Below are positions 1 through 47,897 of a DNA stretch of 64,000 nt, one piece after another. This stretch comes from Chara braunii (taxonomy: Eukaryota; Plantae; Charophyceae). Numbering within the stretch: the stretch's first letter is position 1; the number at the start of each line of letters is the position of its first letter. A model generated the notes under the pieces. It made no database searches. It saw only the letters and a program-made list of their open reading frames with translations, and had not been told where the DNA came from. Made by a program: the position numbers and the translations under genes. Location: NCBI GenBank assembly GCA_003427395.1, contig BFEA01000046.1, positions 2,685,644 to 2,749,643 of the forward strand. The letters run 5' to 3'.

Positions 1-2056
1 AACACAAACACAAACACAGACACGTTGTCGCGCGCGGCGGTCCCGCAACCCAATGAGACCGCTGAACCTCACGGTCGTGTCACGCAGGATTTATTTTCGT
101 AGAACAACTCGTCACCACTCCAACCGTGCGCGCGTGCTACACCTCTCACGACGCCCTGCGACAGATCGGGACGTCGCGAGGTACAACTTACCTCTACCCG
201 AGGGGCTGTCACCACCCTCAGGTAGGCGTATCCCTGCTGAGCTACAGACCCACGTATGAAGGTTTTTACATGCCTGAACAGAGGTAGGTCGGCCGAGGGC
301 GTTTGCTCGATCGCTGTAGCATGAAAATGGGGTACGCGCGGTAAGACGCCTAGGACTGACCCGTTAGATATTCAGGTCGAACTTTGAGATGGTCGTCTAT
401 TTCCGCTTCTGTTCCAAAAACACACTCCTTCTGATTACTATGTTCAACGTATCAAAACCCTATCACTACCAAAGATAAACTATTATACTCAATGTATGAC
501 TGATCATCAGATAATATATAAGACTTAATTATGAATAGTGAGGTATTACCGCTGAGAACCCTTCCCACTTTCACAAGTGTTGAGTGTCCAAACTCTTCAC
601 GGTGTCAATTCCAGTCCAACCCAAATCATGCACAAAACAGACCTGCACAACATAATGCAAAGACAGTTCACATGCCATGCATTAACGGCGTCAACCACCA
701 ACCACTGACATTGTCCCTCACTCCCCAAACCATGCATGACAGCTCTATCTTTCCTGGGATGCAAGCCCAACACCCTCACATTTATTCAAAGGACCCTTGA
801 GAGTGACCAGCACCATTTAGGCGATGACCACAGGTGACAGTTTTACTGACCATAGGGTTTGTTTTTGGATGTAGGTGCCAAGTCAAAGTGGAAAGAGTTG
901 AATCGGCAACGACCGACCTGTTATCGAGTGATAACAGAAAATTGAGTCCTTTATGTAGAACTCCTCCTTCAACTGCAGTAGACCAAAGCAAAGACCTACA
1001 CACACACAGGTCAACAATGATTCAACATCCCCACTTCATTCCCACATAATGATGTCTAAGGATCAAACCCTTAGATCCGGTTTGTGAACTCTGGGATCAA
1101 CATCCCAAAGTCTAACCAATAACTTCTATTTACTCTGAGCCGTCTGTCACACCTCCTCATTTTATTTTAAGAAGTTTCTTGCCTATGTCCTAAGTCCTCT
1201 TAGGGAAATTCATATTTCCCCTACTTTCAGTCCTTTCATTCTCTCTCTCGCGGATAAGCACACCCTTTGATGCTTTATGCGGTAGTCTGGCTGAGATCAA
1301 CTCAAACCAGTGGCGTATTCTACGATGAACTGCGGTTATACGGGGTGTCTTCTTTCTCTAATTCATTTTCCCCACGGTATTCACTTTCTTTTAGGTTCCT
1401 ATTAAAGGACTTTTGGAGTCGCTCCCGATGGAGCACTCCCTTTTTCCTTTCTCTTCTTCTTATCTTGGCATACGCAAGTAGTAGGCTGATTCACCTGGGA
1501 ATCTTTCACTACTTAATCGATTCCAGACAATCTGTTAGTCAGAAGAGTAGTCGAGTCGACCCACGAGAGCACTCAGTCTCCCCTCAATGTCCATGAAGTC
1601 CTCGTACAACCAAGCAGTTCAAGCATTATAGTGCGAGCGATCGGATAACTCACCCGGGAGTATCCCTTTATTAGTTAAACAGGTAGTTAGGAGGTCTATG
1701 TTGAGCCGTCTCAACACTTGACCCAACATTCAGAAAACACTCTAGATCCAAATGTCAATTCTAAATCAAAGTTAGTAACAGGCGGTCTTCACGGATGCCT
1801 CCTATTACTGCTTGATTCAGAGCTCAGTCTTTTCCTCAAAAGTGTAGTAGGACGACCCTACGGGAGTCACCCTACGACTTAATTAGAGTCAGACGAGCTG
1901 GGATTATGTTAATGGACTCAGGCAGACACCAGATCCTCCTTTAACAGGAGTATCTTACCCGGTCTGTTAAGGTGAGGTTAGAGAAATAGCGGGATGACCC
2001 CACGGAAGCCTCCCATGTCCTTCTTCAATGTTAATCAGGTGGATTGTTTATATCGT

Positions 2057-3360
2057 ACATTAGTCATACCTGAACAAGTCCTAAGGTTACTCACCCAGGA
2101 GTATCCCTCTACTTGTTCAACATAATCGCCTTACTTTTCCTTCCATTAGTTGACCTCCAAATCAAACAAGTGTTAGGATAACCCACCCGGGAGCCATACT
2201 ACCACCAGTTTGATGCATAGGAGATTAAAAACAAGTCTTAATTGAGTTGCCCTGACAGTTCACCTATCTGGCCTATGCGTTGTAAGTGAGCAAAAGGCAT
2301 GTTGACTCCCACGGGAAGTCGGATAGATCGACCCAGACTTAGGAGTTCGTACACTCACCCGGGAGTACTCGAATTCCTCCCCAGTCTGGTTCGATTAGTG
2401 ATAGGAGAGCTTCACGGAAGCCTCCTGCTACCTTTTGCCTTTGTTAGCTTTTGAAGACGAGTACCCTACGAGAGTACTGGATCAATTGACTTTCGTTAAG
2501 TTGAAAAAGTGTACCCCACGAGAGTACCGGATCAGTGGTTGTTGTTAAGCTAAAGAAGCGTACCCCACGAGAGTACCGGGTCACATGATTGTTGTTAAGT
2601 TTGAAGAAGTGTACTTCACGGAAGTACCGGATCACATGATTGTTGTTAAGTTTGAAGAAGTGTACTTCACGGAAGTACCGGATCAAATTGATTTCGTTAA
2701 ATTTAAGGAATGTACTTCACGAAAGTACCGGATCAGTTTGACTTTGTTAAACTGAAGGAATGTACTTCACGGAAGTACCGGATCAATTTGACTTTGTTAA
2801 ACTGAAGGAATGTACTTCTCGGAAGTACCGGATTAAAAAGACGGTTGTCAATGTAACTTGCTTGTTAATAGGGAAGATGCACGGCATCTTCCTGTTACCA
2901 ATGTCAGAGTCAACCAATCATTATACCAATTTGTTTACTTTAGTTAGGTCATTAGTATCAAACGATGCCAATCCATTAGTCCTACCAAAACAAGTAGCAG
3001 GGTTACTCACCCGGGAGTATCCCTTTTACTTGTCCAAGCACAATCAACTCATTCTTTTCTTGTTAGTTATTCCCCAGATCAAACGAAGTATTAGGATAAC
3101 TCTCCCGGGAGCCACCCTAATACCAGTTCGATGTGTGGGAGATCAAGACCACTTTTGGGTTAGTCGCCCTGATCGTTCATGTATTCGTTTATGTATTAAA
3201 TTGAGCAAACGATATTGTTGACTTACACGGAAGTCGCACAGATCGGCCTAGACTTTAGGAGTTCGTGCACTCACGCGGGAGTACTCAATTCCCATCCCAA
3301 GTCTAGTTGGATCAGTGATAGGAAAACCCCACGGGAGCCTCCAATTACCTCTGCTTTCGT
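2057..3360. repeat. Diverged ~390-bp direct duplication (2057-2440 and 2973-3360)
   Basis: Shared collinear blocks: cattagtc..ggttactcaccc.ggagtatccct..tacttgt, ttaggataac, tgttgact..cacgg, cagact.taggagttcgt.cactcac, agtgatagga. Confidence 0.85.
2455..2835. repeat. Tandem minisatellite, 8 units of ~50 bp, each carrying one GTAC..ACG..GTAC hairpin
   Basis: Cores at 2461, 2511, 2560, 2611, 2662, 2712, 2762, 2812. Confidence 0.95.
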
Positions 3361-4375
3361 TAGTTGCTTGAAAACGTGTACCCCACAGGAATACCGGACT
3401 AGTCATTGCTTTGATTAATCACATGAAGACATGTACTCCACGGGAGTAACGGATTAGTATTGGATTTAGCTGGTGAGTCAAGAGAGAAGATGCACGACAT
3501 CTTCCTGTCATCAATGTATGCATGTCAAAAGTTAACTAGTTAGGTAGATGGCTGGGTAGTTTGCACGACGAGTACCCTTTTAGTCATTCCATGCAGGCAG
3601 TTTGACGACCCCGATAGAGGCCTCCATTATACTGCCTTTGTTTTTCTTAAGACCATGCAGGCTAAGTTCCTTCTTGGTTCTTTCCTGGGTTCCTTTTCTG
3701 ACATCAGGCACATTCTAATTTCAATCATATAGCTCTTTTGCTTTTGGTGTTTTAGTCCTGAAGAAAGCCATAAACAATATATCGTACAATCATACAAGCA
3801 GACAATAGAAGGGTGTAGCCTTTAAGGGTATATGGGAAAAGAATGAAGCGTGCGTACCTTAAGGTTCCCTGCCTTCAGAGTTCCTCCTGAACTCTGACAG
3901 AGCTCCCACAATCGCCCTGTTGTCTGTTTGTTTGAGTATTTTTTTTCATAGAGTAGACTTCCCAAAAGATATCGTATCTTTTCATATAAGTGTGAAAGCA
4001 AAAGGAAGTAAGGGGATTAGTTTACAGGAAAATAGGGAAGGATGGAGGAGGTAGGTACCATCACACGGTGAAGAGACCCCTCTCCTCTCCATTACCCCTT
4101 ATCTCCTCAAATCTGATCTTTCCCACTTCCTTTGACATCAATCAATCAAGGAACCGCAAGATAGTGCTTACGAGTAAGAACGACAATAATGATCACAATA
4201 ATAACCTCGGATAAATATGGAGTAGTGAAGAAAAAGCGGTTCAGGTACAGGGAGATGAGAGAAGGATGGAGGAGGTAGACACCATCACACGGTGACGGTG
4301 TCCCTTTCCTTTACAGTGCCCTGCTTCCTCTCCTTCCCTGGCCCATGATGCTTAATATCAAGAATAAGCATAATC

Positions 4376-4448
<73 letters not shown>

Positions 4449-4719
4449 TAAAGAGTATATTCATAGAATGCCAACTGCGAAAATCAATAGATGCCTAATT
4501 AAGGCATGCATGAGTATAGGGTGCACATTCATCGAGTATCTATCCAAAAATAGAGCAATATAATTAAGTAATGAGCCAATGTTCACCCCCGTAGGCCATA
4601 TTGTCACAATATCTGGGGTCACTCCTTACTGTTGAGTGCCCGTAGGTTGTAATAGATCTGTCGTCGGAAGGACCTAGCGGTTCCTAAGATTCGTAGTTGT
4701 TACAACCCATGGAATATCA

Positions 4720-6155
4720 CGATCGTGGCTGCTATAGCATCGAAGGTGAAGTGCACAGACTTCCGGAACATCCGAAGGTGACCCTTCAACCGTTGTTCAC
4801 AGCAGACTAGAGGCAAGTGGGTAGTGGTAAGTTTATCCTTGCTGAGTCAGCGGTACCCAATCCCCGTCTCGGTTAGTCCAGTCAGCAAGTATCGCGCGGG
4901 ACAGTGTACACTTAGGGCCGGCGGGAATGAGGCAGACCAGCCACAAGCAGAGGTAAAATCAAGAGGCAGCGCTCAACCATTCATTCATTGCTGCGTGAGC
5001 CACACGAAAGTGCTGCCTCAACGACATATGCGAGGTGGTCTGCAGATCCCCGGGGATGAAGTGGGCTTGAAGGTGAAAGTGATGACTGTGGTAGCTGCTA
5101 TAGCCGTTAGTGATTGATAGTGGCCGTAACCATCTGCAGCGAGTTGACACTCGAATGGTGTTCTCAGTTGCCATATCTCTGAGTTTTGAGTGGACGCTTG
5201 TCGCCAGTTCGTTGTGCCACCGGTCTGCATGTGAGTGGTGTGAATACGAAAGCTAGGCTGATTGCAGAATAACAATAGTAATATTAATGATAACAATAAT
5301 AGTAATAATAATAATAAAAATATAATAATAATAACAACAATGATAATAATAATAGTACTAATGAAATGGTATTCACGAGTTCGCAACAGCTGATGTAGAT
5401 TCCAGGGCTTGACCCATAGTCCCCACCTTCCTTGTGTACAGTGTCTGTGTTGACCCTTAAAGTTGGATCCGTGACCTGTGTATTTGTAACAGTTGATAGG
5501 TCGTGGCTACTATAGTCCAGAAAGGTCAAAGTTGTAGCTGCTATAGTTCCGAAGGGCCCGAGTGGCAGACTTCGGGAAGATCCGGGAGCGGACCTTAGGC
5601 AAGCGGGCAAGTGGTGGGGTCTACCCGTGCTGATTTGACAGTCCCAGTCTCAGTCAGTCTTAGTTCAGTCAAGCAAGTACAACATGAGACTCTATGCACT
5701 ATGGGCATCGAAAAGGAGACCAACGAGCTGCAGTCGTACAAATCACGAGGCAATGCCCTGCCATTTCATCCAATCTCGCGTGAGCTGTTCGGAAGTGCTG
5801 CTACAACGACTTTGCGCAAGGAGGACTGCAGTGAACGCGGAGGACACAGTGGGCGAGAGAGAAGGAGCTCAGTGTATCGATAGGGTAGAGACACCGATAG
5901 CCATAGTTTGGAGTGAAATGTGCGAGTGCGTATGTGCGAGTGTTCAAAGCTGCGCTTGGGATACCCGGGGTGATCCGGTGTGTGAACAGGGAGTTGTTAG
6001 GGGGTTGAGCCGCCCCAGTCAATTGAAAGCGAACTTCTTATCTGGGTATCATATCTCTGAGTAATGACAAGGCGCATGCCGCCGTTTGCTGTGCTGCTGT
6101 ATACCCGTATGAAAAGTGTGAATGAGACGAGTCTGATCAAATAATAAAATAATAA

Positions 6156-6197
<42 letters not shown>

Positions 6198-7187
6198 TCA
6201 AACGAGCAATAGCGACCCTCGGCAATCAATCAGCATCATACAGATGCGACCAGTTAGTCTGGACCTCGAACCAACAACAGAGTTGCATCACAAGTTTCGC
6301 CAAATAAGAGCACAGCAAAGGCTCACCCGTGACAATGTTGGAATAACCTCGTCTCACCATAAACAAAGAACCAATGTCAATTTCCTTATCGGGCGTTCAG
6401 CGCCCAGACTTACAGATGGCAGATCCTATCTGGAATAATCTCAATGCCGTATGGTGACAACAGCGTTCCCTAAGTACGAGCTTACAGTGGCCAATGCCGC
6501 ACGCTTTGCTGCATTCTCAACCTCGTTCCCAAACACACTGATACCGCTAGTACCCAAGGACCCCCATGCCTCTAATAATAATAATAAAAATAAAAATTAT
6601 AATAGTAAAAATAATAATAATAATAATAATAATAATAAGAATAAGCAACAACAAGATGGCAACTCCAGACCACACCATCACACTGAAAGCCAGATAGTCA
6701 CATTGTGTCCAGAGAGTAACATTGGGCCAATAATACACCAATGGAGGTCCGTAGTACTGAAAAACCAAAGTCAAGGAGAGCATGCTCTCACGACACCGAC
6801 ACGAGAGCCCAGCCTCTTCGCCCTTACACTTGGCGTTCATCGCCCAGCCTACTTATCCTATGAATTGACAATGCGTGTGTCGACATCAGTAGCAGCCCGA
6901 AGTACTTGAAGATGTCGCCCATATTGCCAATACAAGGTAAGTGCCCTCACATCACCCTCATCATCATCACGCCGGACTAATGTCGACATCCTATCTGGCG
7001 TTCGGTGCGCAGTCCACAGGTGGCGGATCCTATCTAGCCTAGACTACTATGCCGCTGAGGATGTCAACAGATTCCTAAGTACGAGCGTGTTTCGGCCAAT
7101 GCCGCACGCAACAGACACCAGGTATGTTTCTCTCTTTTCTTACAACCTCCATCCCCAACTCATAAATAATAATAATAATAATAATCA

Positions 7188-7251
<64 letters not shown>

Positions 7252-7600
7252 GTAATAATAATAATAATAATGATTATGTACGGGAAAAAAAAAACAAAAA
7301 AAACGAGCAATAGCGAGCTTTAGAAACCAAGGAACATTATACTCACACTGCCGGATAGTCGTGACCAGCAGTAGAATGGCATCACGAGCTTCACCAAATA
7401 AGAGGACACCCAAAGCTCAAAATTAACTATGCTGGAATAGTCTCATCATCATCATCAACGAAGTATCAATGTTGATATCGTATCTGGCACTTGATACCCA
7501 GACTATGAATGGCAGATCCTATCTAGCCTAGGCTATAATGTTGCTGCTGATTTCAACAGCTTTCCGAAGCTCGAGCAGATCTCGACCAATACTGCATTCA
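4720..7600. repeat. Diverged duplicated modules separated by (AAT)n tracts
   Basis: 4720-5280 resembles 5530-6140 (gctgctatag..gaagg..cagactt, aaatca.gaggca). 6200-6570, 6980-7110 and 7300-7600 share ggc.gatcctatct; 6200-6570 and 7300-7600 also share gagcaatagcga and caaataagag. Confidence 0.7.
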
Positions 7601-7687
7601 TCATCATCAGGTACGTCTCTCGCATCACTCACGATCTTGATCCCAACACTGATGCCATGTGGACCCTTCCTTAGGTATGTGTCCTCA

Positions 7688-7718
<31 letters not shown>

Positions 7719-8580
7719 TCCCCCTTCTTTTCTCCTTTCTCTCATTTCTCTCTCCTTTCTTCGATCTCTCTCATTTCCTCCTTCTCTCTCCCTCTCCGAT
7801 TTTTCTCCTCTCCTTCTCCCTCTCTCTCTCTCTCCCTACATCCTGTTGCATACTATAAAGGTACAGACTAGAACAAGAACTGACTTCTCAATACAAAGTA
7901 CAAGATAGCGTGGCGGGAGACTTAAATACCAATGATCCGAACAATCAATATTGCGATGCATCCCTAACATACTTCATCATCGTTCCATAGTGTGAAGGGG
8001 CCTGACGCTCGTACACAAAGAATGCGCCAGTCCCCGCCATACACAGGCAAAGAGAAGGGGGGTCAGACGAAGGAGAGGAGAAGTTGGGAATGTCGTCAAC
8101 ACCAGATCCCCGTCCTAATGTCTGAATCCCAATGTCCAGTCCGGATCCAATGTCGTTGAGTCTCCGAGCCATAACTCTCTCTCTCTACTAACTCCTTCAC
8201 ATACATTCATACTCACACATTCAGGCGGTAGTGTATCTATACATGCTTTAGCGGTAGGTTCATACCATTTATTTTATTTAGTTATTTATTATTATATCTA
8301 TATATATTCATATATATGTATATCATACCTTTGATGGAGGTTGCGTGCAAATGCCTTGGTAGGAGCTCACATGCACGTATGCATATACACACTCCCACAT
8401 ACACACTCACACAAACACACTCAAACAAACACATCTTTGATAGGATGTGTAAAACGGAATGAATCTTCCGCTGAAACGTGGAAATATACACTATCACTTT
8501 TCTATTTGCAAGTTCTATCGATCCAAGGAGCGTGCGGCGAATCACGGTTAGCTGTTGGCCAAGGTCGGGGACTCCATCGT

Positions 8581-8650
<70 letters not shown>

Positions 8651-10271
8651 ACATTCCCGTTGGCGAGCCGGGGCAAAGACACGACAGCGGGTGAGCGCAA
8701 GTGGAGAGATTCATCGACTTTGTCTCTCCTCTCGGAGGGAAAGCGTGACAGCGGCCGGCGCAAGCGGCGGTGTACATTTCCAAGTTGTAACGGGAGTTTC
8801 ATTCGATTTTATCTCGGATCGATTCGCTCTCACACTATTCCTCTCTTTTTCCGCTTCTTTCCTACTCCCTTCATGCGATTCTTCCTTCTCTCTATGTCCA
8901 TGTTTCTTAGGTACGTTGCCCGATAGTCTTCCTTCTTGTGCGCATCCTCCCTATGGGAACACCATGAAGCCAAATCATGGAGTCGACACACTCACGCACT
9001 CCTTCCCCTCTAAGACGTGTTCAACCTACACATTTGATCATGCATCTCTCCCCTACAACGTTCAGTCTTTCTCATACGTACTTAGTTGAAATCGTAGTCG
9101 TGAATAAAAAATAACAAACAATAATAATGATAAATAATAATAATAATAATAGTAATAGTAATAATATAAGAAAATGAATATATACTTTGCATTTTCGTAA
9201 CCGGATTTATTCGGAACGAGGGGAGTGTTGTGTTTGATCCAATCCCCCATTCGAAGTAGCCCTTGCTCCTACTTATGCAAAGGTGACGTACATCCCCTTA
9301 TTTTGGGGAGGGGGAGAAGATTCATTCACTCCACCTTTCCGTTGGTGGAAGTGACCGAAAGTCGAAATGAGATCGACGCTGACTTGTTCATACACAGGTA
9401 CTCGCACACTCGTATATACATCTCCGCAGTGGTAGTAGTAGTAGTAGTAGTATAGACACCCAAGATCCCGAGACTTACCTGTCTTTTCTCTATTCCTCTT
9501 CTTCGTCGTTGCCGTAATCGCCGTCGTCGTCGTCGTCGATGTCACTATCGTTGGTCTTATGCTCGCTGTCTCGCAGGTAAGTGCTCCATCACCTTCGCTT
9601 TCTTTCTCCTTCCTCTTCTTCTCCTTTTTCTCCTCCTTCTCTCTCCTCTCCTCCTCCTTCCTTCTCTTCTTCTTCCTTTTATCTCCCCTTTTGGTGGTAC
9701 TTCGTCCGTCTCCCGCTTACCATCTCCTATGCATGCTACCACCGCGCATCCTAACGAGGCCGGGCCGATGACGAGGTTACCTTACGAGTTCAATGGCAGT
9801 GATACGGCTAGGTAAGCACCGTTTTCCCCACCTTCTCCTTTCTTCTCCCCCTCACCTCTTCATTTTTCTTCTTCTCTTCCCTCTTTTCCTCCTTTTTTCC
9901 TTCTCCTCCTCACGTTCTGCTATCTTTGCGCGATCTCCCGCTTCTCGGCTTACTCGCGATATCCCCTCTTCGCCTCCGAGCACTTTTTTTTTTTTTTTTT
10001 TTCCCTTTACTCCTAGTCCGTTGTCCCCCGAGTCGGATTTCCGCGGCGTCGTGCTGTAGCCTTACGTGGCTAGCTCGTCTGGGATCCCAACTCACTCCTT
10101 GACTGAACCTACTGTGATCTCAGCGGTAGATTCACTCAGGCGAGGTTATGTGGGATTTCTGACCACGGGGCCTAAAAACGAATTTCAAATCTAACTAAAA
10201 GAAAAAAATAAAAGAAGAGAAAAAAAAGAAAACAAAAAGGATCTAACTCCTAACTACCCCGTCGTGGCAAC

Positions 10272-12902: not shown

Positions 12903-14981
12903 CTAATCCTCGAAAGTGAGTCCCAACTGCTCATACAACTGAACCCTGAACCCTTCCTTGGTTCTTTTAATCAGATTCTCCTTCCTATCGATGAGTCTGC
13001 TGTTCTCATCGAGACTAACTAACTCTTTTTCTCTATCTGTCCTAAAACCATGACAATCATCCCTCCTGTGAACTCCCTTCATACAATACCAACATAACTT
13101 CTTATCCTCTTCCTTTGATCTCTTTGCAAATGATGGGACATCTTGTGATGCAGCCCCAATTAATGTTTCAAGGTAAGACCTCTTCCTCTCCTGTCCCACT
13201 CTGTTATCTGTGAGTGACGTTTCCCCAGTATCTTTTTTAGGCAAGGTGACAACCCCTACCATCAACCCTTTGTTCTGATGGATACCCTTAAGTCCTTCTT
13301 CATCTCCTTCCATCCTTGGATTTTCCTTTTTGTCCTCAGTCTTCCCAGCATCCTCCACTTCAACCTTTTCCTGAATACCCTATTTTGATTGTTTCAAGGC
13401 CTCTTCCACCTTCTCCCACTTCTCATTTTCCAGCTTCTTCTTGCTTTCTTCAATTGCCTTTCCTTGTTCACTGGCATTTGCCTCCAACTTACCAACTTCT
13501 TTTTCCAACTTCTCTTTCTCCATCTTTTCTGTCTCCGCCTCTTTACTCTTGTTGTCAAGAGCAATGCTTAGAGCCTTCACCTTTACCTCCAGCTTTCCCT
13601 GTTCAATTTTTGCTTTTTTCACCTCAGCCTTCAAACCCTCCATTTCCTTTTCCACCTTTGCCCACTGCATGTCCCTTTTTTCTTCTCTTGCTCTCAACCT
13701 CTGAGTCTCCTTCAGGATCTCAGGGACATGGTTTGCTACTCCCTGCGTGAACAATTCTGTTTTTTTCCTTCATTCTGTCCTGAAGTTCCTGAAAGGGAAC
13801 TTCTAATGCTCTTCTTCTTTCTTCCTCCACTTTTCTCAACCTGCCGTCTACTTCTGCCTCCCCCTCAAGAATCCATTCACAATCGTCCCTGAGTAGCTCA
13901 TTCAATCGGATCAACCTGTCCATATCAGTAGCTAACTTGGAGCTGATCACGGTTTCAAAGAGTAGCATCCTTTCCAACTTTAAGGTCCAGTGTGCGTCTG
14001 TAGGCAACTCATTTTCTCTTAACGAGGCCACATCCCAATTCCTCCATTCCCTGTTTTCTTTCTCTTTTCTCTGCCTCTTTTCCTCTTTCCATCTCCTTGT
14101 GCCCCGTTCCTTTGGAGACTCATTGGAAATAGGCTCTTCTGTAGTTCCAGATGGTCCTACCACCTCATTCTTCTCACTGTCTTTCTCCTTTCCCTTCACC
14201 TTCTCGTCTCCTTTTTTCACCTCTCCTGCCTTGCCATTGCCTTCCTCTTCCTTACCATGATGCCCCTCCATTTGTGTCTTGTCTTCTTTTATTGAGTCAT
14301 TTCCACTGTGAGCTTTGTCCTCATCATTCCCCAGCTGAGGGACTCTGATATTTCTCCTATCTTCCTTCCGAGCTCTCCTTTCTATCTTCTCTCCTCCCTT
14401 GCCAATCCACAATCCCAGCTCCTGAAGTAACTGTTTCTTCTTTTGTCTCTGCACCTCCAAGGGATATGCCTTTCTCATCTTGACAAGGAAACTCCCCCTG
14501 CTGTCCGATTCCTCCTTGATCCTCTTCACTGCCTCATACTCCCTTGGTGCTATCCTCCTCATTACCTGCTCCATCATCTTCCGTTCACCCCATCTTCTTT
14601 TCTCTGAGCAAAGGTTGATGCTGTCCTCGAAATCTTCCAAGTTTGTGCCATCGAAGATGACATGATCTCATCCCTTGTCAAGTCCCCATATTTCGTCCAT
14701 ATACCAGCCTTGAAATCTATCCACCCCAGACATTCTAAGGCAATCTCATCTATCACCACATTGCACTTTCCCAGTCCTGTCACCTGTTCAAGCATGGTCC
14801 GAGTACTCCACTCTCTTCTGAAGGCATGCTCCTCAAATTCCCTCAGGAAGATCCTCAGATTGTCCCCTTCCTTGTAAATAGGCATTCCATGAGAATCCCT
14901 CGTTACCAGCTGCGCCTTTTTTTGTCCCTCTCTTCCAGGAGTTGTCCTGGAAGCACCCGCCATCCCTCTCTTCTGTGCCAT
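12903..14981 (-). pseudogene. ORF3 downstream of integrase: second Gag-like protein (2 capsid-NTD-like repeats, coiled coil, CCHC knuckle)
   Basis: ATG at 14981 (GCAGCCATGG). Motifs PIYKEGDNLRIFLREFEEHAFRREW and VIFDGTNLEDFEDSINLCSEKRRW; E/K heptad region 13380-13900; CWYCMKGVHRRDDC. Frameshifts at ~14660 and ~13750, in-frame stop at 13380. Confidence 0.75.
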
Positions 14982-15006
14982 GGCTGCCTGTTTTCCTGGG
15001 TCACGC

Positions 15007-15055
15007 CTGCACACAGGAAAAAAAAGGGAGTGACAGATAAAGGGAAAAGTCAACA
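15007..15055 (-). promoter_or_regulatory. Putative splice acceptor upstream of ORF3
   Basis: Minus strand reads TTGAC..ttttccctttatctgtcactcccttttttttcctgtgtgCAG|G, 25 nt before the ATG. Confidence 0.55.
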
Positions 15056-15137
15056 GCTGGTTAACAATAGTTTGTTCGCAAAGGAAATGCCACAGCAAAG
15101 TCTCCACAAGATCATCAGGCTTTTCTTTCATTTTTTA

Positions 15138-16526
15138 TCAACTCACCTCTTGCCTCATTTTGAACTTCTTCAGCCTAGATCTAGAAATCCAGTCTTTTCT
15201 TGGTGTTCCAACCATCTCTTCCAGTTCATAAGCTCCATAATTGCCTCTGCGTCTGACTCTGAAAGGTCCCAACCATCTCTTGTCCAACTTCCTTGACCAT
15301 TGCTTTTCGAGTGGGGGGTCATACAACAGTACTATCTCTCCAACTTCAAGTGGTTCATCCCTTACGCGAGGAGATTTATCCCACCTTTCTTTGTCCCGTC
15401 CACGGCTGTCAGCCACTCTTTCCACTGCTTCATGTATCCATTCTTCAGTAATACTGACCTGCCTGACCCTGATGTCAAGCAATTCTTCCAGAGGCATATC
15501 ATTCTCGAGATCCTGCCTTCGCCACGTCTTTAAGAAACTTTCTATAGAAAACGTGGCATGCCTTCCATACCACAGGGTTGCAGGGGCATATCCTGTGGTT
15601 CTTTTGACTGTGATGTTCTCGACAAAGAACACCGTTCTTAGGAACTTTGGCCACAGGTTTCGCTTCCCCGCTGTCCACTTCGCTAGCAAATTGGTGATCG
15701 TACTGTGCCTTCTTTCAACAGGTGCATTCGCCTGCGGATGTACTCTGGTCGTGTACTTGGGAATAACACCTAGGTCTGTCTCTTATACACATCTTGCATT
15801 CGCCTGCGGATGTACTCTGGTCGTGTACTTGGGAATAACACCTAGGTCGTCCAGCAACTCTTTCACTTCCCCACACGTAAATTCAGACCCCCTATCCATT
15901 GTAAACTCCACAACGAAAGGATACCGGAGGTAGTATTCCTTGATGCACTTTGCCAAGACTGCTCCTATCTTGGTTCGGATGGCCTTTCCATCAATATCTC
16001 GTGCATCAAAGATATAATTATAGCCTCCGAGTCCCAATGACATTGCTAGCAGATCCGGATGGATCACTGCCCCCACGTCCTTGATATATCTTGGATGTAG
16101 AGGTTCCTTGCACCTGATTGGAGATCTGATTTGGCAGGGAACGCACGATTCGCAGTACTTTCAGATCATTCCATACATACCCTCCCCAAAGAAGAGCTCG
16201 GTAGTGGCGAAACTCTTGTGACCTCCTACGGGTCCATCATGTAGCGCTGCTATCACATCGATATGTCGATTCCTGCCACAAATGACCGTCCTAGGAGGTC
16301 CCTTTTTGTTCCTGATGAAGAGATGGTCTCCCCTCACTATGTAATGATCTCTCATACGGAGAATTTTCTTACCAACATCTCTTTCACTTTTATCCCCTGA
16401 GAGAAGAAATCTCATTTCTAGGTGGAACCCATCATATTCTTCTTCCCGGAAATCCTCCGAGATCTCTCCTTGTTCAAACTCCTCTCCTTTCATCTCTTCA
16501 TCAAATTCGAAATCATCCTTCAACAA
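15138..16526 (-). pseudogene. Integrase (HHCC, DDE core, GPY/F), no chromodomain
   Basis: LHDGPVGGH...CESCVPCQ; MDRGSEFT; HPQANAPVER (after removing the adapter artefact); TTGYAP; WLGPFRV. Confidence 0.93.
15776..15794. other. Nextera/Tn5 mosaic-end adapter (assembly artefact) with 53-bp flanking duplication
   Basis: CTGTCTCTTATACACATCT lies between identical 15723-15775 and 15795-15847. Confidence 0.97.
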
Positions 16527-16571
16527 TATCTCGTTTGCCTTTACTATCTCTTCCTTATTGTCAGCCTGAAC

Positions 16572-18600
16572 TTATAGTAGTGAGTTGACGAGGTAGTGTA
16601 TTCTCCCTATTGTCAGCAGGTGCTGATCTACTTGCTTCGTTTCTGCCTCAATTGTTACTGGATCGTCAGTCAGTCTGTAGGTTTCAGCCCGAGCCAACCT
16701 TTCCATCCATTTTTCATTCCTTTCTCCCCATGCGTCTTCTTCAATAAAAGGTTTCAACACCAACTCATCAACCTTTACAAAAGTTGCTGGGGCGTACCAC
16801 ATGGACTTTCCTCTCCTTGCATCCCTATCATTAACACTCAGTCTCCATGAATTCACATGGAACTGCATATCATCTTCATCTAGGAATCCATCCACTGGTG
16901 GAGTCTCTTCCTTTGCATCCCCAGGTTTTTCCCACTCTATCTTACTTAATCCATCAGCCCTGTTCTTGTTCCCTGGGATATGTTCCAACTGAAAATCGAA
17001 CATCCAGATATACGTGAGCCATCTGGCGATAGTAGGATATGTGGGTTCGAAATTCTTGAGGGAATATACAAGGATTGTTGGATCTATCCTTAGGACAAAC
17101 CTCCTCCCATAGAGATAGTGCCTAAAGATACGTAGGCAGTGCACTACTGTTAAGGCTTCCTTTTTGAATTGAGAGTAGTTCCGGTCAGTAGCATTGAGGG
17201 TTCGACTCTCAAAACGCAAATGCTTTTCCTTCCCTTTCAGATCTGCCTATATTAGGACTCCTCCCAGAGCTGTGGGTCCAGCATCAGTCTCTATGATAAA
17301 GGGTCTTTCTGTTACAGCTTCATAATCAGGGACCCCCAACACAAGACCTCCTTCTTTAAATTTTTCCTTCAAACTCTTCACTACTTGTTCCTGCTTCTCT
17401 CCCCATTCCCATTCCTGGTTCTTCCTAACCAGTTTCCTCACATGTCCAGTCTTTGCAGCAAACCGTTCGATGACAATTCTCCAGAACCCGCACGTCCTAA
17501 GAAAACACCTTACTTCGCTAACGTTCCTGAATGGCGTAGGCCATTCAAGGATCTTATTCGTTTTCTTGGTGTCTGGACGACGTCCTTGCTTGTTGCACAC
17601 AAAGCCCAATATAGTAGCCTCACTCATGCAATGCCTGGACTTAGCTCCGTTAGCCCTAAGATCATATTCCTCTAACAAATCGAGTACCTTACTGGGATCA
17701 TTGACATGATCCCAGACAAACTTCCTTACGCCAGGCGCAACCTCTTGCTCATCTTTCACCATAGGGCCTTTTACTGCTAGATCATCGATGTACGGTTCAG
17801 TAATCTGTGGACTGATTGGCTGCATGACTCTTACCATACTCCTTTGCATCATGGCTACCGCATTCATTTATCCTTGGGGTGCCACGTTCATGTGAATTAG
17901 TCCTCTCGGAGTGTGCATTGTCGTGATCGGCCTATCTGCCGGATACACTGGGAATTGGTCATAACCGGAGTATAAATCTATAAGCGAGATAATGGACCTT
18001 CCAGCACAGGCTTCAGAGAGTTGGTCAGTGTTAGGGAGCCCTCCGGCATTCCTAACAGTTACCTCGTTCAACCTTTGCAAATATTGCACGCACCTGAGTA
18101 CTTCATTTGGCTTGATGAAGCAGAACCATGGCAAGGCATAAGGTCCGCTAGAGAATTCTGCTACGTGAGAACCAATCTTCCCGTCAAGGTACCCTACCAC
18201 CCTTCTCTGATCATCGGGATTTGGATACCTGACTCCTTTAACATTCCAAGGTTGATGCGGGACTGTGTGAATTCGGATCATCCCTATCTTGTCCACATCT
18301 AGCCTTCCCCTCTGCTCATCGTTGAAGGCATAGGTGTTGTGTTTTTCCTTCATTAAGTCAACTACTAACGCCCTTTCTTGCTTGGTTAAGAATTCAGGTT
18401 CACCAATGATCAGGTCTTTCTCAGTCTCCTCGTTGATACGACAGGATTCAGCTTCCCATTTCTCTCTCATTTGCCTAATCAATTATCGTTCCTGCTCATA
18501 GTACACTCCCTCCTCATGTGTCACTAAGACCGGAATAGGGTGGCTCTTTTTGTCTACCGTCTTGTACCTCCTCTTTCCCCCTTGCTTGAGCCCACCTCTA
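16572..18600 (-). pseudogene. Reverse transcriptase and RNase H
   Basis: YKTVDKK..P, IDLYSGYDQ, APQG, YIDD, LGFVC, IETDAGPTALGGVL, ESRTLNATDRNYSQFKKEAL, HIPGNKNRADGLS; in-frame stops. Confidence 0.95.
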
Positions 18601-19471
18601 AAAAATGCTGGCCGCATGCTTGAGCATAGGGTGCTTGCACTTTTTCTTCCCTAGGGGGTGGCCTGTACACCAACTCCATTCTCCCCCCTTCAGGGAAATC
18701 ATACAACTTATCAGCCAATGCTCGAATGACCTCTGGTTCCGCCATATCATACGCGGATACCATATACATGGCTTGGTCGATGTTGGCCAGACTCAAGGCT
18801 AATCCTCCACTCTCTTCCTCTTCCTCATCCTCATCAAACCCCCACTCTAATTCTCTTCTTCTATTCTCAGATTCCTCGAAGGTATATGACCGAGCATTGA
18901 GTCGGTTCTTCGAGCTATGAGGGTCTGTATTCTTACAGGTAATGACCTCGAAATTACCATAAGCGGGGTCACATAAAATTACGTACAAGGTCCCGTCATG
19001 CTTGTTCATGATAAGGGACTCTGTTCGCGACAAGAAGGACCTTCCCAATAATATAGGAAGATCCAAGGTAGTCATTATGTAAAAACAGGATCGGACCCTG
19101 ACGCTTCCTATTTCCACAACTACATTTGAGGCAATCCCTACTTAGCCTGATTTTCCACTAGCCCCATTGAGGTAACCTGGGCCCCTCCTATCGATCTCCA
19201 ACCCTAGCATCTCAGCCGTTTCAAGATTCATAATATTCATCTCTGCTCCCCTGTCCAACATCCCAGGGCATCCTTTCCCTCTGATATTGACATCTATGGA
19301 CCCTGTCCCCACAGATTTCCAATCCATCTTACTCCCAGCCGCAGTCCAGTTGGCTTCCTTGGGGATCAGGTCGCCCATCCTTACCGTCGCTACTCTCTTT
19401 CTTGCCAGTTTAGCTTTTACCAGTTCCCTGAGCTTAGGTGCAGTTGTCAAAATCTCTTTTAAATTTAACAA
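18554..19471 (-). pseudogene. Retropepsin-type aspartic protease
   Basis: MLDRGAEMNIM (degenerate DSG) and ILLGRSFL; in-frame stop at 19142. Confidence 0.85.
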
Positions 19472-19497
19472 CTCATTATGTCCCTCAAGAAGCTTAT

Positions 19498-21801
19498 TTA
19501 CCAGATTCTCCAGATCAAATCCTTCTTCAATCGACGTCTGGTACTTTCATTTCTTCTTTGACTTCTCCCCAACTTTTTCCTTTTCTTATCATCAATCTTC
19601 CGTTTTTTAGCCTTTAGCACAGCCTCTTTGTTCTCGTCCTCCTTAGGCAACTCATCATGTTCCTCCTCTTCTTCTTCCTCTATTTCAATAGAGGCTCCCC
19701 CTTGAGGTGGTACAAGAGCCTGCGCTGATTCCTTGGGCGCGTTCCCTCCTTTAGGTCTTCGTGTAGTATGAGGAACAAAGTTTCTCTGTGCTTGGTAAGC
19801 TGCTTCTGAACCAGCCGCTAGAGTAGCTCTTAATGCTCTGGGGTTAGGAGCTCTAGGCTCGTCATTTTCTCCTTCGCGACCCATTGTGAATACGTGCGGC
19901 ATCCTCATTTCCAAGTTCCTTACCTCCTCGCAGATATCAGACATTTTCACATTTAACCTACCCATCCTATCTATCATGTCTTTCATTCTTCCCAGGGTTT
20001 CCCTTGCTGACTCTCTAACTACAATGTCTTCGTCTGACTCAATTTCGACTAATGGCGTATTCTCTTCTTCCTGGCTAATTCTCGCTCCTTTCTTCAACTG
20101 GTCACTTAGTTCATCAACTTCCTTCACCCAGATAAAAGGGTCTTCCTTCTCCTACCATATACGAAACATGGCAGGGGCGCTAGGTCCAAGCCCTGCGACT
20201 CTAATGACTTCTTTTCTCGTGCCCCCCGGGATGTTTGGATCGATCTTATCTCCTCTCTTATCGAACACATCACCGTCGATACTTGATGTGATCAAGCCAT
20301 CTTGCTCATCCATTCTCCTAACATGACATCTCCTTACTGTATGTCCTTTTATCGTACAGTGCGTACATACGCACTCGCTGTAGTCTATCCATCCTCTTCC
20401 GGCCCCTTGACCATTTCATTGCTCGTCACTCCTTCCAAACCCTCTACCGTAATTCTGGTTATAGCCTTGACCGTAACCTTGGCCATAACCTTGGTTGTAA
20501 CCTTGTCCAATTTGATTAAAGTTTGACTGATTGAAATTCCCANNCNGATTTCCTCCTTGATTTCCCCAATTCCCACCTTGTCCACCGTTTCCTCTTCCTC
20601 CGAATCCTCTTCCTCCATTGCCATTTCCTCTTCCTCCATTTCTCCCTTTACCGTGTCCTTGACCGTGTCCCTGCTCTTGGAATTGTCCTTGGTTACCTTG
20701 TGGCGGCAAAGCCTGTTGTGGCAACCCTCCGTTTGCTCCTTGGACCTAGGATGGTCCCGCCCCAGCTCCTTGAAGCTGGGGTAAGTTTGGGTTCATCATA
20801 ATTTGTCCAAAACCCGGCCGTTGATTCCCGGGGTAATATCCCGGCCATGCCCCCATAGGAGTCACCACTGACCATGGTCCAAATGGAAGAACCGGGGCTG
20901 ATGTTCCTGCGACATTTGTTCCCCCAGTCTGTTGTGAACTTTGTCCCTTTCCTGCCCCCTATTTCTTTGGTGTCTGGTTCTGGTTCTGCTTTTGGGCCTT
21001 CTTGCCTTGCGTTACCGTTTCAGTTTTCGCTTCCCCTTTACTTCCATCACTCTCCTCCTCAGGTCTTCTCTTATTCGTCACTTTTTCAACTGCCATCACT
21101 TTTTCTGACTCCACTTTGTCCTTCAACTCTTTTAGCTGAGTGACCATACTACTCAACACTCCTCCTAGGGCTGAGTCAGCTCCTTGGACGATTCCTATTT
21201 CCTTCCTTCTCTTCCTCTCCATCTTCACTTGATGGTGGAACACTTGGTCTAGGTCCCCAGTTTCCAAATTCTTCTTTATGGTTTCCCATGAAGTCGTTTT
21301 CGCCGGTGCTCCTCCCCGGGTCAACTCCATAGTCTCGTATCCTGAGAACTTTCCCAGAAAAATGACACACTTCATTTCTTCTGAAAGCCCCGGTACTCGC
21401 TTCGCCATTTTCTCAAAAGTTGTTGCAAATTCCCTTATCGTGGTGAAGTCATTTCGGTTGATGTTATAAAGCTGGTCGATTGTCGACAACCGGTCTCCCA
21501 GCTTATATTTCCTTTGCATCTCCACTTTGAAATTATCCCAGTCCCCTTTGGCATCGGCCACAATTTGTTCAACGTCGGGGCGATATTCCCACCACACATA
21601 TTCGAATAACTGGGCGAACTTTTTCACCGACATCAATCGATTGAAGACCTGCTCTAGCAACTCATGTCAGTGCGACACTCTCTCTCCTTGGAATGAAAAG
21701 ATTTCTATCCGAGGAAGTTGAGACCTCCTGGCATTTCTGTTGTCCAGTAATCGTGCGATCTCGGCCGCCGTTATGGGGTCTGCCCCGTTTGCATTTCCCA
21801 T
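19498..21801 (-). pseudogene. gag: gag (capsid, Gly/Gln/Asn-rich linker, CCHC knuckle)
   Basis: Starts MGNANGADP at 21801; FSFQGERVS..WDNFKVEMQRKY; GGRG/QGY repeats; CTHCTIKGHTVRRC at ~20330-20380. Confidence 0.85.
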
Positions 21802-22072
21802 TTTTCCCGCTTGTTCTTAGTGAATCTGTGTTACATAGACAAAAACAATGGTGTTTCAGATTAAATTTTTGGCTGTCTCACTTTTTTTTCCCTTTTTAAA
21901 CTTTTCCCATTTTTATCCCACGTACCATTTAAGACTCTCTGCATCTACATTTCGAGTTCATGATCCCTTATCAACCGTCACTCATTGTCTTTCCTAACCA
22001 GTGTCCCTGTCTAGCTTCTAAATACCCAAGTCCGGCCTCTTGTGTCAAAATTGATTCAGGTCACCTTCTTTA

Positions 22073-22912
22073 TCATCCCATTCGTCCAACTTCTTCAACG
22101 GATACCGAGTCGCCCGTCCCGTAATCATATACCATTCTAAACATTATGGGGATGCTATCAACATACACCCTGATTTTTACTTCGACCTTGAGCTGTTTCC
22201 AATATGTTTGCCTTGGCTCCATGAAGTGGACGCGGACGTAAGCGTTAACTATTGACAAGATTTCCTTGAAATCCCTATCAGCCAATTCTGGCCTCATTTC
22301 CAAATATAGGCAATAGAGGGCTTCTGGTGTGAAAAATTCGCACCCTCCCTGGTCTGCCGCTCGAGCTGTTAGGGCTGCTTGCTCTACATTTATGTGCCCA
22401 TTAAAGACTTCATCAATGATGAAGTCCGGAAGAGTGGGGGCTATTATATAGTCGGAGGGATAAACGAAGTCGGCTGCCCATCTTGCTTCTATTATAGAAA
22501 TCACTGGTCTGAACTCCCCCCAACTTGTTTCTCGGATCTTTTCCTCGAGAATCGTTCCAATGATTAGGATGTATTGTGATAAAGGCCGACTGTATCCTAC
22601 TGCCAGATCTATCACATGCATCCTCCACAGATGTGACGAAAGATACAACGTTGCCCGCACTATTATACTCTCCCGATTGAGAGTGTGCCCCATTTCAACC
22701 CAAACAAATGCCTCATGTCCGATCGAGGTGCCCCACCATGCAGTGATCTCCTCCTCCCTTTCACTTAGGCTTCTAGGTAGAGACATTCTCAAACCCTGTG
22801 GCGTACGAACGGGGATTTCGATCCCAGCGACCCAGTGGAAGTCGTTGATGATGATGCCTCCGGTTCCGACCATGAGGCGGTGGGGGAGAACTATGTTTTC
22901 ATCATCGGTCAC
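22073..22912 (-). CDS. ORF0, accessory ORF upstream of gag, unknown function
   Basis: 279-codon open frame with globular-protein composition; the frame extends upstream past a single stop. Confidence 0.6.
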   Translation of the reverse strand: MTDDENIVLPHRLMVGTGGIIINDFHWVAGIEIPVRTPQGLRMSLPRSLSEREEEITAWWGTSIGHEAFVWVEMGHTLNRESIIVRATLYLSSHLWRMHVIDLAVGYSRPLSQYILIIGTILEEKIRETSWGEFRPVISIIEARWAADFVYPSDYIIAPTLPDFIIDEVFNGHINVEQAALTARAADQGGCEFFTPEALYCLYLEMRPELADRDFKEILSIVNAYVRVHFMEPRQTYWKQLKVEVKIRVYVDSIPIMFRMVYDYGTGDSVSVEEVGRMG

Positions 22913-43499: not shown

Positions 43500-46400
43500 C
43501 ATGGATTAGAAGGATGTTTTTTTGTATGTTCCTATTTTCGATGAAGCTTGTTTGAGAAGGGTGGATGATGTCTTCCATGACCGGAATCATTCTATTAGCT
43601 AAGGCTTTAGACAACGTTTTGTATACTACTGTGAGAAGAGTGATCGGGCGGTAATTTATGATATCTATTTTGTCATTTTTTTTTATAAGACGGTCAGTAT
43701 CCTTTGCGCCACTCTTTCACCCATTTCCCCTGTGAGCCATACTTCTTTATAGAAGTCCATAACGTCGTGGCTCAGGAAATCCCATAACAATGGACTGGTG
43801 AAAACCAGAGAAACAGACCAAAACCAGAGAAATCTTATAGACAGAAAAACATAAACGAAATATAACGTATTTCGACACATAATGGTCGATTTTACACCGT
43901 TTTGTGTTTAAATGTCATTAAAAAAAACCCTCAAAACTAGTACATATTCGAGGTCGACAACGCAGTTGAAAAAACGAGCCCCTTTTCGAAGAGAACAGGC
44001 GACCCCTAGTCATGGTTGGCGAAAAGGTTTCCAATATATGAAGATTTGGGTGGATGTCGAAACGAACACTCAGTAGTGTACAGTGAATGCAGTTTTTTTT
44101 TGCAAACAGAAGAGTCTTTTCCGGAACCAAATCTAAGGACTAAAAAACTGAGCAAAAACTTTGTAAACCGAACAAATGGGTCGGTAATCCTCGTTTTTTT
44201 TCACTTTTAATATCAAGGAAATAGAAGTTTGAAAACGAAAGTAGTAAATTCACGGACTCCAGAGCAAAGCAAAAAACAAGCAATGAGAACTGATTTCAAA
44301 TCTCCAAAAGTCGAGTGCAAACGATTGAGCAAATTCGACCGACAAGAAAATTCAAAGAAATCCAAACATGACCTTATAGGCCTATAACACGAATTTTTGG
44401 ACATTGAAAAAAAAATCGAATTTCACAAGAATTTGAATTGACCCTTGTAATTCTCTTGAAATTCGAAAGTAATACTTTTCGAATTATAGGCATATAACGA
44501 GTGCTGGAAAATGAACGACTGGCATATGAATTTGAGTCGGTAATCTGTCAAGTGCTTGTAACCCTATAAATGCATGATACAACATTGAAAAATCGGACAT
44601 CCAAAATTGGGCAACTTATAGCCCTATAACTTAAAAACTAGGAGTTGGTTCGAAAACGTGAAACAATTGCTTTGTCAATCGACAGTTGAGATGAAGGCAC
44701 AAAAAAACGTTCCAAAAATGGTCACTATTTTCGCCTAAACGCAAGAAAACCGAAAGTCCAGAAATTTTTGAAAGGTAATATGTCAAGCGTTTGAAGCCCT
44801 GAAAACGCATACGACATCGTTGAAAATCTGTTAACAAAGCTCAATGAACTTAAAGCTCTAAAACTTTAATTGAGTAGTTGAAACTTGAACTGCAAATCTT
44901 TAGTCAATTTTTAAATTCTCAAAATCGAAAACTAAAAGTACGCAAAATGCAAAGAAAAAGATCACCAAAACAAGAAAGGTTGGCCACACATGCCTGGCTA
45001 AACGGGTCATGCGAACTACGACCTACGAATGTACAAAACTTTACAAGGGTTTAAAAACCAATAACGATTGAACTCATACAATCGGACGAACAACGACAAA
45101 ATGAAACCTGCTTTGATGCGGAACTAGAAATGACCTCAATCGCGATGACTCTCTGACAACCTCCTGAACAAACGGTTCCTGAAAGGTTTTCCTAGTCAAC
45201 ATCCTCCGTTGCCATTGAATTCAACATCTCGGTTATCTTTTGTCGGGTCAGCGAAAATAAGGTTTTGTCTGTCTTCAGTTGGAAGTTGTAATAAAGAACT
45301 CCTCATCTCCACTCGTAGACGTCCTCGGAAGGCTCTCTCGTAGTTTTTCCTTGAGGATTTGTCTTGAATCGAGGATAGTAACCTTCTCCTTTCTCACGTT
45401 GTGCAAACCAAGCAACTTTGAATCGTTTATCGACTAGCAGTTCGGCAACCTTGCCAATGTGGTAAGGTTTGCCTCTCTCTTCCTGCCCCGGACAAACTCG
45501 TAGTGCGATGAAAGTGTTGACCTCGAGATCGTCGTACTTTCCGTCTCTGTCCTCTCGGAACTATCTCTTGTGAGCACCGATGTAGACGGGTCTCTCCGGA
45601 GGGAAAAGATCATCCCAACGTTGATCGAAGCCAGCAGCGGTTGAAGAAACTTCTTTACCTGGTTTGCTGACATCAACTTCGATAGAGGGTCACACGAAAA
45701 ACTCTTTGAGACTTTTGTCCTCAAGGTCGAGTGTTTCCTGCGTTGCTATGAACTTATTCCGCCACTCATGTTGTGGGGTTGAGCATAATTCGACAAACCT
45801 TGAACGTTGGCTTTCAAGGCTGCGATGGAAAATACATCATCATCAACCTTAAATTTCGAAGACCCTCCTGTTTCTCAATTACGAACATGACCTTCGTTGC
45901 TGCCGACCTTGTCACGCCTCTTGTCCTCACCCCGACAAGTAAGCCGAAATATGGCTTCCAAAGATCGGATTGCATGTTTTGGCGAAGCTTGAACTTGTCC
46001 TGTTGGCTCTGACTTGAAGATGTTCAGATCTTCTCTATTGTTCGGCTGCCACTGCGAATTATGATATTGCTTGCTCCAAATGCGCACCTCTCCGTCGTCG
46101 TTGCGCCTTATTCGGAAATGTTGATTGAAACTAATATCATTGACATTTTGTAGATGATCCTGAATGTACAACTTCCAATCCATTGTTTTCGTCATCTCCT
46201 CAACGTAAACGCCATGATCTTGTTCTACCTTGTATGACTCCCTAATGATGTGTTGCAACTCAGGAAGATCGAACGCATCATGTACAGCCAGCTTTCTCGA
46301 GAAACAGTTGAACATCTGATCGATGTCCTCGTGTGTGTGACCCACAAGAAGAAAGTTTAACTGAACTTTACTAAACACTCTCATCTTTACTAAGAAAACA

Positions 46401-47431: not shown

Positions 47432-47498
<67 letters not shown>

Positions 47499-47836: not shown

Positions 47837-47897
<61 letters not shown>

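Follow-up and report, generated by a model that had tools for sequence, protein, structure and literature searches.

A 64,000-nucleotide stretch of Chara braunii DNA (contig BFEA01000046.1, positions 2,685,644 to 2,749,643; hereafter the window) was analyzed. The window is nuclear and microsatellite-rich and contains assembly gaps. Near its left end lies E1 (26–3915, minus strand), a very high-copy, non-coding repeat unit resembling a long terminal repeat (LTR), which runs from TGTCG... to ...CCCACAATCG. E1 harbours an array of about 27 predicted minus-strand stem-loops (1554–3620), each of which presents the tip C-CGK-G when that strand is read. A homologous repeat unit, E2 (49209–53486, minus strand), carries a different hairpin array in the matching relative place.

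The hairpins of the E1 array fall into two types. About 20 are of the CGU type, with plus-strand motif starts at 1562, 1790, 1860, 2001, 2310, 2413, 2467, 2517, 2566, 2617, 2668, 2718, 2768, 2818, 2880, 3226, 3330, 3385, 3439, and 3493. The CGG type, which has a bulged U, starts at 1653, 2097, 2186, 2358, 3010, 3104, and 3271. Two outlying minus-strand hairpins with the same tip (4056–4076 and 4280–4300; motifs at 4064 and 4288) lie beyond the end of E1, within an 88-nt direct repeat (4010–4097 and 4234–4321). With the seven bulged CCGGG-type hairpins the total is about 29, close to the roughly 30 reported in an initial annotation of this DNA, and all stem examples quoted there are present where it placed them. 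Its description of the tips as C(ACG)G triloops holds for the roughly 20 CGU-type hairpins, but about seven have ACCCGG at their plus-strand centre, which on the minus strand gives a C-CGG-G tip followed by a bulged U. A five-letter form describes the tip best, namely CMCGR on the plus strand or YCGKG on the minus strand, with a C-G pair closing CGU or CGG. Tips are spaced by 45–62 nt or by 89–137 nt. Many hairpins have two tiers, with an additional outer stem (e.g., those at 3104, 3010, 2186, and 2358); in this copy, those at 2097, 2818, 3271, and 3385 have decayed. The array is flanked by two more stable hairpins of the minus strand, at 1424–1450 and 3600–3625, which carry the tetraloops AUCG and UAUC, not the CGK tip.

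The array grew by duplication at several scales. Unit B (2058–2973, minus strand) contains five distinct hairpin types, then a 50-bp tandem, then one more hairpin, and unit C (2974–3540, minus strand) repeats this hairpin order with only two units of 50–55 bp. The tandem sub-array (2451–2837, minus strand) consists of 7.3 units, each with one 7-bp hairpin that reads GUACUNN CGU NNNGUAC on the minus strand. The initial annotation had proposed growth at three scales, including a 390-bp duplication and a young 50-bp tandem. The duplication scales are real, but the larger one involves a block of about 490 bp, in which 2058–2536 recurs at 2974–3458 with 74% identity and an offset of 916 bp. The young tandem was recovered by Tandem Repeats Finder with a period of 50, 7.3 copies, and 84% matches. 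An older paralogy is seen among hairpin types, whose flanks share 61–79% identity (repeat families D5 and D6). The array is not a plain satellite, the simple 50-bp tandem being limited to 2451–2837, and the other hairpins, about 20, lie in units whose stems and spacers are unrelated in sequence. Copies of the family also differ in how many 50-bp units they contain, with joints that skip 50, 51, 54, 119, 124, 151, or 159 nt.

The coincidence of tip and fold was examined by several scans. On a strand-neutral alignment, with a hairpin defined by a score of at least 8, 24 of the 27 CMCGR sites in 1400–4400 sit on a hairpin (the motif count for this region is 26–27), compared with 13 of 140 in the other 60 kb. 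In 200 dinucleotide shuffles of the region the mean was 7.6 motifs, while hairpins averaged 0.54 and never exceeded 4. A covariance model built from 16 array hairpins returned 22 minus-strand matches in 1554–4300 and no plus-strand match there; elsewhere in the 60 kb it found only eight weak matches, all with E values of at least 0.41. A triloop scan requiring at least six pairs, G.U included, and allowing at most one mismatch found 17 hairpins with CGT on the minus strand (2002–4289) and 10 for the plus-strand equivalent.

Covariation in the stems was tested by aligning 16 hairpins without gaps in their minus-strand reading, with shuffled and slid partners as controls. Paired cells amounted to 82.5% as observed, 59.6% after shuffling, and 44–52% with slid partners. 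Cells altered on both sides numbered 35, as against 10.8 in the shuffled alignments. The covariation score was 0.785 versus 0.296 for shuffled partners (none of 500 shuffles reached the observed value) and at most 0.27 for slid partners, confirming the constant tip and the varying yet paired stems that had been pointed out in the initial annotation. Examples are found within the 50-bp units, where one pair alternates between C-G and U-A, a further pair alternates between U.G and U-A, and the closing-side pair appears as U-A, U.G, or C-G; in each case the pair is kept on the minus strand.

The duplicated units offer a second comparison, in which stems were called in one unit and read in the other, in both directions. 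Between units B and C, stem columns differ by 17–18% and other columns by 33%. The changed Watson-Crick pairs became minus-type G.U in 12 cases and plus-type G.U in 4, and were broken in 7; two compensated doubles were found per direction, which are largely the same pairs read from both sides. When instead the full minimum-free-energy fold of one 420-nt unit was tested on the other, the result was noisy, with many spurious long-range pairs, and the hairpin-centred comparison is the cleaner of the two. Compensating changes of the kind sought in structured RNA were thus found among paralogous hairpins and across one duplication. The predicted hairpins of the array are not a product of chance, and their stems were constrained after duplication.

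The two strands differ in how well they pair. Read on the plus strand, the same 16 hairpins are 68.8% paired, compared with 82.5% on the minus strand. In the six pairs nearest the loop, 19 G.U pairs occur on the minus strand and none on the plus strand; collapsing related units leaves roughly a dozen independent minus-strand cases and still none on the plus strand. In the strand-neutral alignment, inner-stem wobbles are 20 minus-type versus 3 plus-type, whereas outer-stem wobbles show no bias (about 14 minus-type versus 17 plus-type). The consensus fold of units B and C reaches −95.6 kcal/mol on the minus strand, with clean local hairpins, versus −63.3 kcal/mol on the plus strand, with scrambled long-range pairs. 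The fold z-scores of whole segments reach significance for either strand, which is expected of palindromes, and on their own they separate the strands poorly. GC and AT skew in 2001–4000 are near zero. When the family majority is used to give them a direction, the changes private to this copy comprise, in plus-strand terms, 11 C>T, 8 G>A, 8 A>G, and 3 T>C. Because this spectrum would favour plus-type wobbles, the minus-strand bias is not the mutation bias of this copy. The better minus-strand pairing through G-U described in the initial annotation is therefore upheld, and equal wobble on both strands, which it had named as speaking against its RNA reading, was not seen. The predicted pairing strand is the minus strand.

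We favour, with slightly better than even confidence, an interpretation in which the array would be a cis-acting structured RNA on the sense (minus) transcript of E1, acting as a multivalent protein-docking platform. The folded molecule would be the sense RNA of the element, with the unit read as an LTR on the minus strand. The roughly 29 like tips would form a docking row for a putative protein, either element-encoded (Gag-like) or supplied by the host, that reads the tip and ignores the stem. Since a small constant tip is combined with free stems about 29 times on one strand, the suggested partner is one for which the tip is the recognised part and any helix beneath it suffices. Binding would probably serve packaging, export, or stabilisation of the element's RNA. 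The initial annotation had also suggested a cis-acting RNA element, amplified under selection, a reading that is partly supported.

Several of the observations above bear on other explanations. The motif CACGG/CCGTG might be a signal in duplex DNA, such as a repeated transcription-factor or methylation target within a regulatory portion of the repeat, with the palindromes incidental. It occurs 26 times in one orientation and 7 times in the other, and LTR U3 regions often hold repeated enhancer boxes. Such a signal, however, would conserve its flanks and would not demand flanks that are complementary yet unrelated from site to site, nor would it yield a wobble bias on one strand, and we regard this explanation as very improbable.

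The folded molecule could instead be minus-strand single-stranded DNA, for example a replication or reverse-transcription intermediate. RNA and DNA cannot be told apart by sequence alone, no mismatch in DNA is more stable than G.T, and expression in the oligo-dT RNA runs described below is very low. On the other side, frequent wobbles next to the loop would weaken a DNA hairpin of 6–7 bp, and other clues suggest a unit read on the minus strand, in which case that strand would be the sense strand of the RNA. To our knowledge, no eukaryotic element is known with rows of about 30 DNA hairpins. A DNA fold consequently strikes us as improbable.

Neutral evolution of palindromic repeat DNA could also be considered, in which slippage, quasi-palindrome template switching, and gene conversion would make the palindromes and keep them perfect; these would have spread merely along with the repeat, and the folded strand would have no function. 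Growth by duplication at several scales, the variable unit number among copies, and the free decay of this copy (the hairpins at 2097, 2818, 3271, and 3385 are broken) are all in keeping with it. Templated correction, however, would produce Watson-Crick palindromes that are equal on both strands, and not 19 G.U pairs against none. It also leaves unexplained the constant tip on unrelated stems, stems that change half as fast as spacers, and the different constant top of E2 in the same slot. We therefore judge the neutral origin to be unlikely, while giving it slightly more credit than a DNA fold.

Small-RNA precursors, or decoys for the silencing machinery, would be another use of the hairpins. 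Some two-tier hairpins do reach about 20 pairs (e.g., those at 3104 and 3010). Most stems are nevertheless only 6–12 bp long (inner stems included) with loops of 3–6 nt, far from Dicer substrates, and the best Rfam match, MIR408, scored 16.7 bits versus a gathering score of 64, so that no Rfam family matched and the hairpins do not resemble microRNA precursors. This is the explanation to which we attach the least probability. At gathering and permissive thresholds alike, Rfam returned nothing relevant; no tRNA genes were found, and an open reading frame (ORF) inside E1 (2760–3218) is without protein relatives.

Other copies of the family bear on the predicted docking array in a further way. 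Two DNA runs each supplied about 3800 contigs that align to 1200–4360 at a likeness of at least 80%, and the summed contig depth over this interval is in the thousands, from which it follows that the stretch is a very high-copy repeat. Among 548 variable places, the best 40 were compared with the family majority, and 14 of these best-supported places lie in hairpins. The majority letter restores a pair or the tip in 10 of the 14 (1559, 1796, 1876, 1989, 2198, 2819, 3275, 3387, 3391, and 3449), converts a Watson-Crick pair to a minus-strand G.U in three (2375, 2866, and 3101), and breaks a doubtful outer pair in one (2022). The predicted hairpins are a property of the active or ancestral element, of which this copy is a decaying example.

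RNA reads aligning to 1200–4360 numbered 6 and 139 in two oligo-dT runs, so the repeat is nearly silent in the runs sampled. Most reads are less than 90% alike and therefore come from other copies. The ratio of plus to minus first mates is about 2.3:1 across the array and about 3:1 over the whole stretch outside 3850–3955. In the usual stranded libraries made with deoxyuridine triphosphate (dUTP), a plus-strand first mate corresponds to minus-strand RNA. Reads per million differ about 12-fold between the two runs, which belong to one study, a hint that expression of the family may vary with condition or tissue.

The limits of E1 are sharp. TGTCG stands at 26 and CCCACAATCG at 3915, and homology with E2 likewise starts at 26 and stops at 3915. 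Both units have TG...CA termini, with TGTCG at 26 and 49209, and at the right end the motif CCCACA (3906–3911) in E1 corresponds to CCCGCA (53476–53481) in E2. The two end motifs occur together at only two places in the window, namely E1 and E2. Many family contigs diverge behind 3921, with about one quarter of the summed depth continuing past it, so that sharp shared ends and high copy number are found together. Next to this end, at 3916–3940, the minus strand is moderately rich in purines (17 of 22 bases). The 25 bases to the left of E1 (1–25) and the reverse complement of 3917–3941 are alike, both being rich in CAAAC/CAGACA; this may be either a low-complexity coincidence or an inverted flank. 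A 58-nt piece at 3864–3921 has 5–10 times the contig depth of its flanks and is therefore common to more repeat families than the rest of E1. On the minus strand, a donor-like site, AAG|GTACGC, follows this piece.

Both the ends of E1 and its copy number are those of an LTR, and "LTR-like" is the limit of our claim, because no partner copy, target-site duplication, or clear primer site was found in the window. This copy may be a solo LTR or a 3' LTR, or may adjoin assembly gaps. The orientation of E1 on the minus strand is favoured by the wobble bias, the purine-rich tract at the 3916 end, and the RNA reads, and also because the long block conserved between E1 and E2 would then form the 3' (R-U5-like) end.

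A number of points weigh against the docking interpretation and have to be set beside the evidence for it. The LTR identity and the orientation of E1 are not proven. No second E1 copy or direct-repeat LTR pair is present in the 64-kb window, the E1 flanks CACGT and ATCGC do not match as a target-site duplication, and no TGG, as expected of a clear primer-binding site, follows either end of E1. The covariation evidence comes from paralogous hairpins of a single copy, from one duplication inside it, and from an incomplete list of the letters of the family majority, and covariation among paralogues is not equivalent to that among orthologous hairpins of a family. Strand-specific C-to-U changes on the minus strand, during retrotransposition of ancestral copies, might in principle account for every minus-strand G.U pair, and a G.T wobble is tolerated in DNA hairpins too. 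RNA support is thin, since the reads are few and mostly diverged, and they would point weakly to a minus-strand transcript if the libraries follow the usual dUTP protocol. Finally, the docking partner is hypothetical.

The comparison with E2 extends the picture of the array to a related element. E1 and E2 have three pieces in common, a left block, a short middle block, and a right terminal block. The conserved left block (26–363, minus strand), which would be the 3' terminal block of a unit read on the minus strand, is aligned as 23–363 with 49206–49566 at 66% identity over 369 nt (E = 8e-34). The middle block (903–940, minus strand), found by pairwise alignment, runs from GAATCGGCA to GATAACAG. 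Just inside the right end of E1 stands a separate hairpin (3877–3897, minus strand), whose stem covaries with its E2 counterpart at 53446–53468, two pairs being compensated. The E2 array lies between the middle and right blocks and consists of ten hairpins with a constant top of 19–20 nt (52334–53166). The initial annotation had called the E1 array a second, independent one. This does not hold, because the two arrays fill the same slot of related elements, with different tips. The E2 stems are almost all Watson-Crick and therefore give no strand call.

The tips of the two arrays also bear on the idea that the hairpins might promote RNA-RNA kissing through self-complementary CCGG loops, leading to dimerisation or condensation as in retroviral dimer-initiation loops. 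Seven loops of E1 contain the palindromic CCGG (1653, 2097, 2186, 2358, 3010, 3104, and 3271). About 20 of the 29 tips, on the other hand, are C-G-closed CGU triloops, which are too small and not self-complementary, and the E2 top is not palindromic. Kissing is therefore a very unlikely role for the array, although we rate it a shade above a duplex-DNA signal. If the docking platform is retained, the arrangement of E1 and E2 permits an extension of it, which we put forward tentatively and consider rather doubtful. Each repeat family of Chara would carry its own hairpin "barcode", a row of identical tips (C-CGK-G in E1, the 20-nt top in E2) read by the family's own protein. If true, this would let the RNA of each family find its proper particle or export pathway despite the many retro-elements of the genome, with tips switching among families while the slot in the element stays.

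The predicted E1 array resembles several known systems in part. The 3' untranslated region (UTR) of the transferrin receptor contains five iron-responsive elements (IREs) with a constant CAGUGN loop and variable stems. Like the E1 array, the IREs form a row of constant-loop hairpins with covarying stems; as is proposed for E1, they serve as a multi-site protein platform in a non-coding part of the RNA. They differ in having five sites rather than about 29, in their loop and bulge rules, and in belonging to a host gene and not to a mobile repeat. The Rev response element (RRE), the constitutive transport element (CTE), and psi are export or packaging elements of retroviruses and retrotransposons, and tandem repeats occur in the non-coding regions of plant Ty3/gypsy elements; tandem amplification is common inside LTRs or UTRs. 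As is proposed for the E1 array, RRE, CTE, and psi are cis-acting structured RNAs in non-coding parts of retro-elements, but they are single complex folds or few repeats of fixed sequence.

The loop pattern of the Smaug recognition element (SRE) is written as CNGG followed by zero to three letters. SRE hairpins (CNGGN loop) are bound by SAM domains, and RNAs of hepatitis B virus (HBV), human cytomegalovirus (hCMV), and hepatitis A virus (HAV) use hairpins of this type to recruit ZCCHC14/TENT4 (PMC9282228, PMC2275152). As proposed for the E1 hairpins, the loop of the SRE is read and not the sequence of its stem, and its use for RNA stability or export may have a parallel in a retro-element RNA such as that of E1. 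Seven CCGGGU loops of the array fit the SRE pattern, as a pattern match only, and the roughly 20 C-CGU-G tips do not, having U where the SRE pattern requires G. SRE sites are also single or few, in contrast to the E1 row of about 29. Assignment of the array to the SRE family was considered and rejected, as its majority tip C-CGU-G does not fit.

In single-stranded RNA viruses and HBV, packaging signals are dispersed as many stem-loops with a short loop motif that the coat or core protein recognizes (PMC6281560, PMC7612645, PMC8206606). Viral packaging signals and the E1 array alike comprise many small stem-loops with a short common loop motif and unrelated stems, and recognition of the viral signals is thought to be multivalent, as it would be here. 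The viral signals, however, are degenerate and scattered through coding sequence, whereas E1 has about 29 near-identical tips in a compact 2-kb non-coding array, partly a 50-bp tandem, in a cellular repeat. No description of hairpin arrays with constant tips and free stems in Chara or in LTR retrotransposons was found in the literature searched. If the docking interpretation is right, the array would be the natural equivalent of synthetic MS2/PP7 hairpin arrays, in a mobile repeat of thousands of copies. In an early-diverging relative of land plants, it would provide a testable handle on the recognition of retro-element RNA, be it for packaging, for export, or for stabilisation. The retention of the array slot in related elements despite a change of tip would become easier to understand, and the tip together with its reader protein might serve as a new orthogonal RNA-tagging pair. 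The minus-strand call fixes which RNA to synthesise for pull-downs.

The left neighbour of E2 is a DUF7869 gene element (45392–49208, minus strand) with ORFs at 45875–46918 and 47831–49027, the latter having an acidic N-terminus and no Pfam match. The best protein matches of the DUF7869 ORF are hypothetical proteins of Chara braunii (55–79% identity), and the DNA of the element is 85–87% identical to the Chara braunii locus CBR_g48331 on scaffold BFEA01000055 (GCA_003427395.1). The left end of E2 is known to the exact base, since homology of the DUF7869 element with another Chara locus (L002) ceases there. L002, which holds a DUF7869 relative, has no hairpin array. Another Chara locus (L003) contains the E1/E2 left block at 9111–9357 with 75% identity, and no hairpin array, middle block, or end motif was found in the 6 kb following that block. 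The DUF7869 gene was considered as a part of the repeat and rejected as a mere neighbour, both L002 and L003 being without the array. A metagenome pattern scan yielded one candidate (L001), which was dismissed as a chance 19-nt match on a GC-rich, prokaryote-like contig with no other similarity; another metagenome pattern scan returned nothing.

A degenerate Ty3/gypsy element occupies 12903–22912 on the minus strand and encodes gag, reverse transcriptase, RNase H, and a Tf2-type integrase SH3 domain, the element being broken by stops. No LTR pair is recognisable for it in the window, and its ORFs (12.9–22.9 kb) are without E1-like sequence on their far side. About 9 kb of non-coding, repeat-rich DNA separate the last Ty3/gypsy ORF from E1. 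Within 4370–7300, tandem units of about 490–900 bp each close with an (AAT)n microsatellite, and several AG|GTAAGT-like sites are present on the plus strand in 6900–9900.

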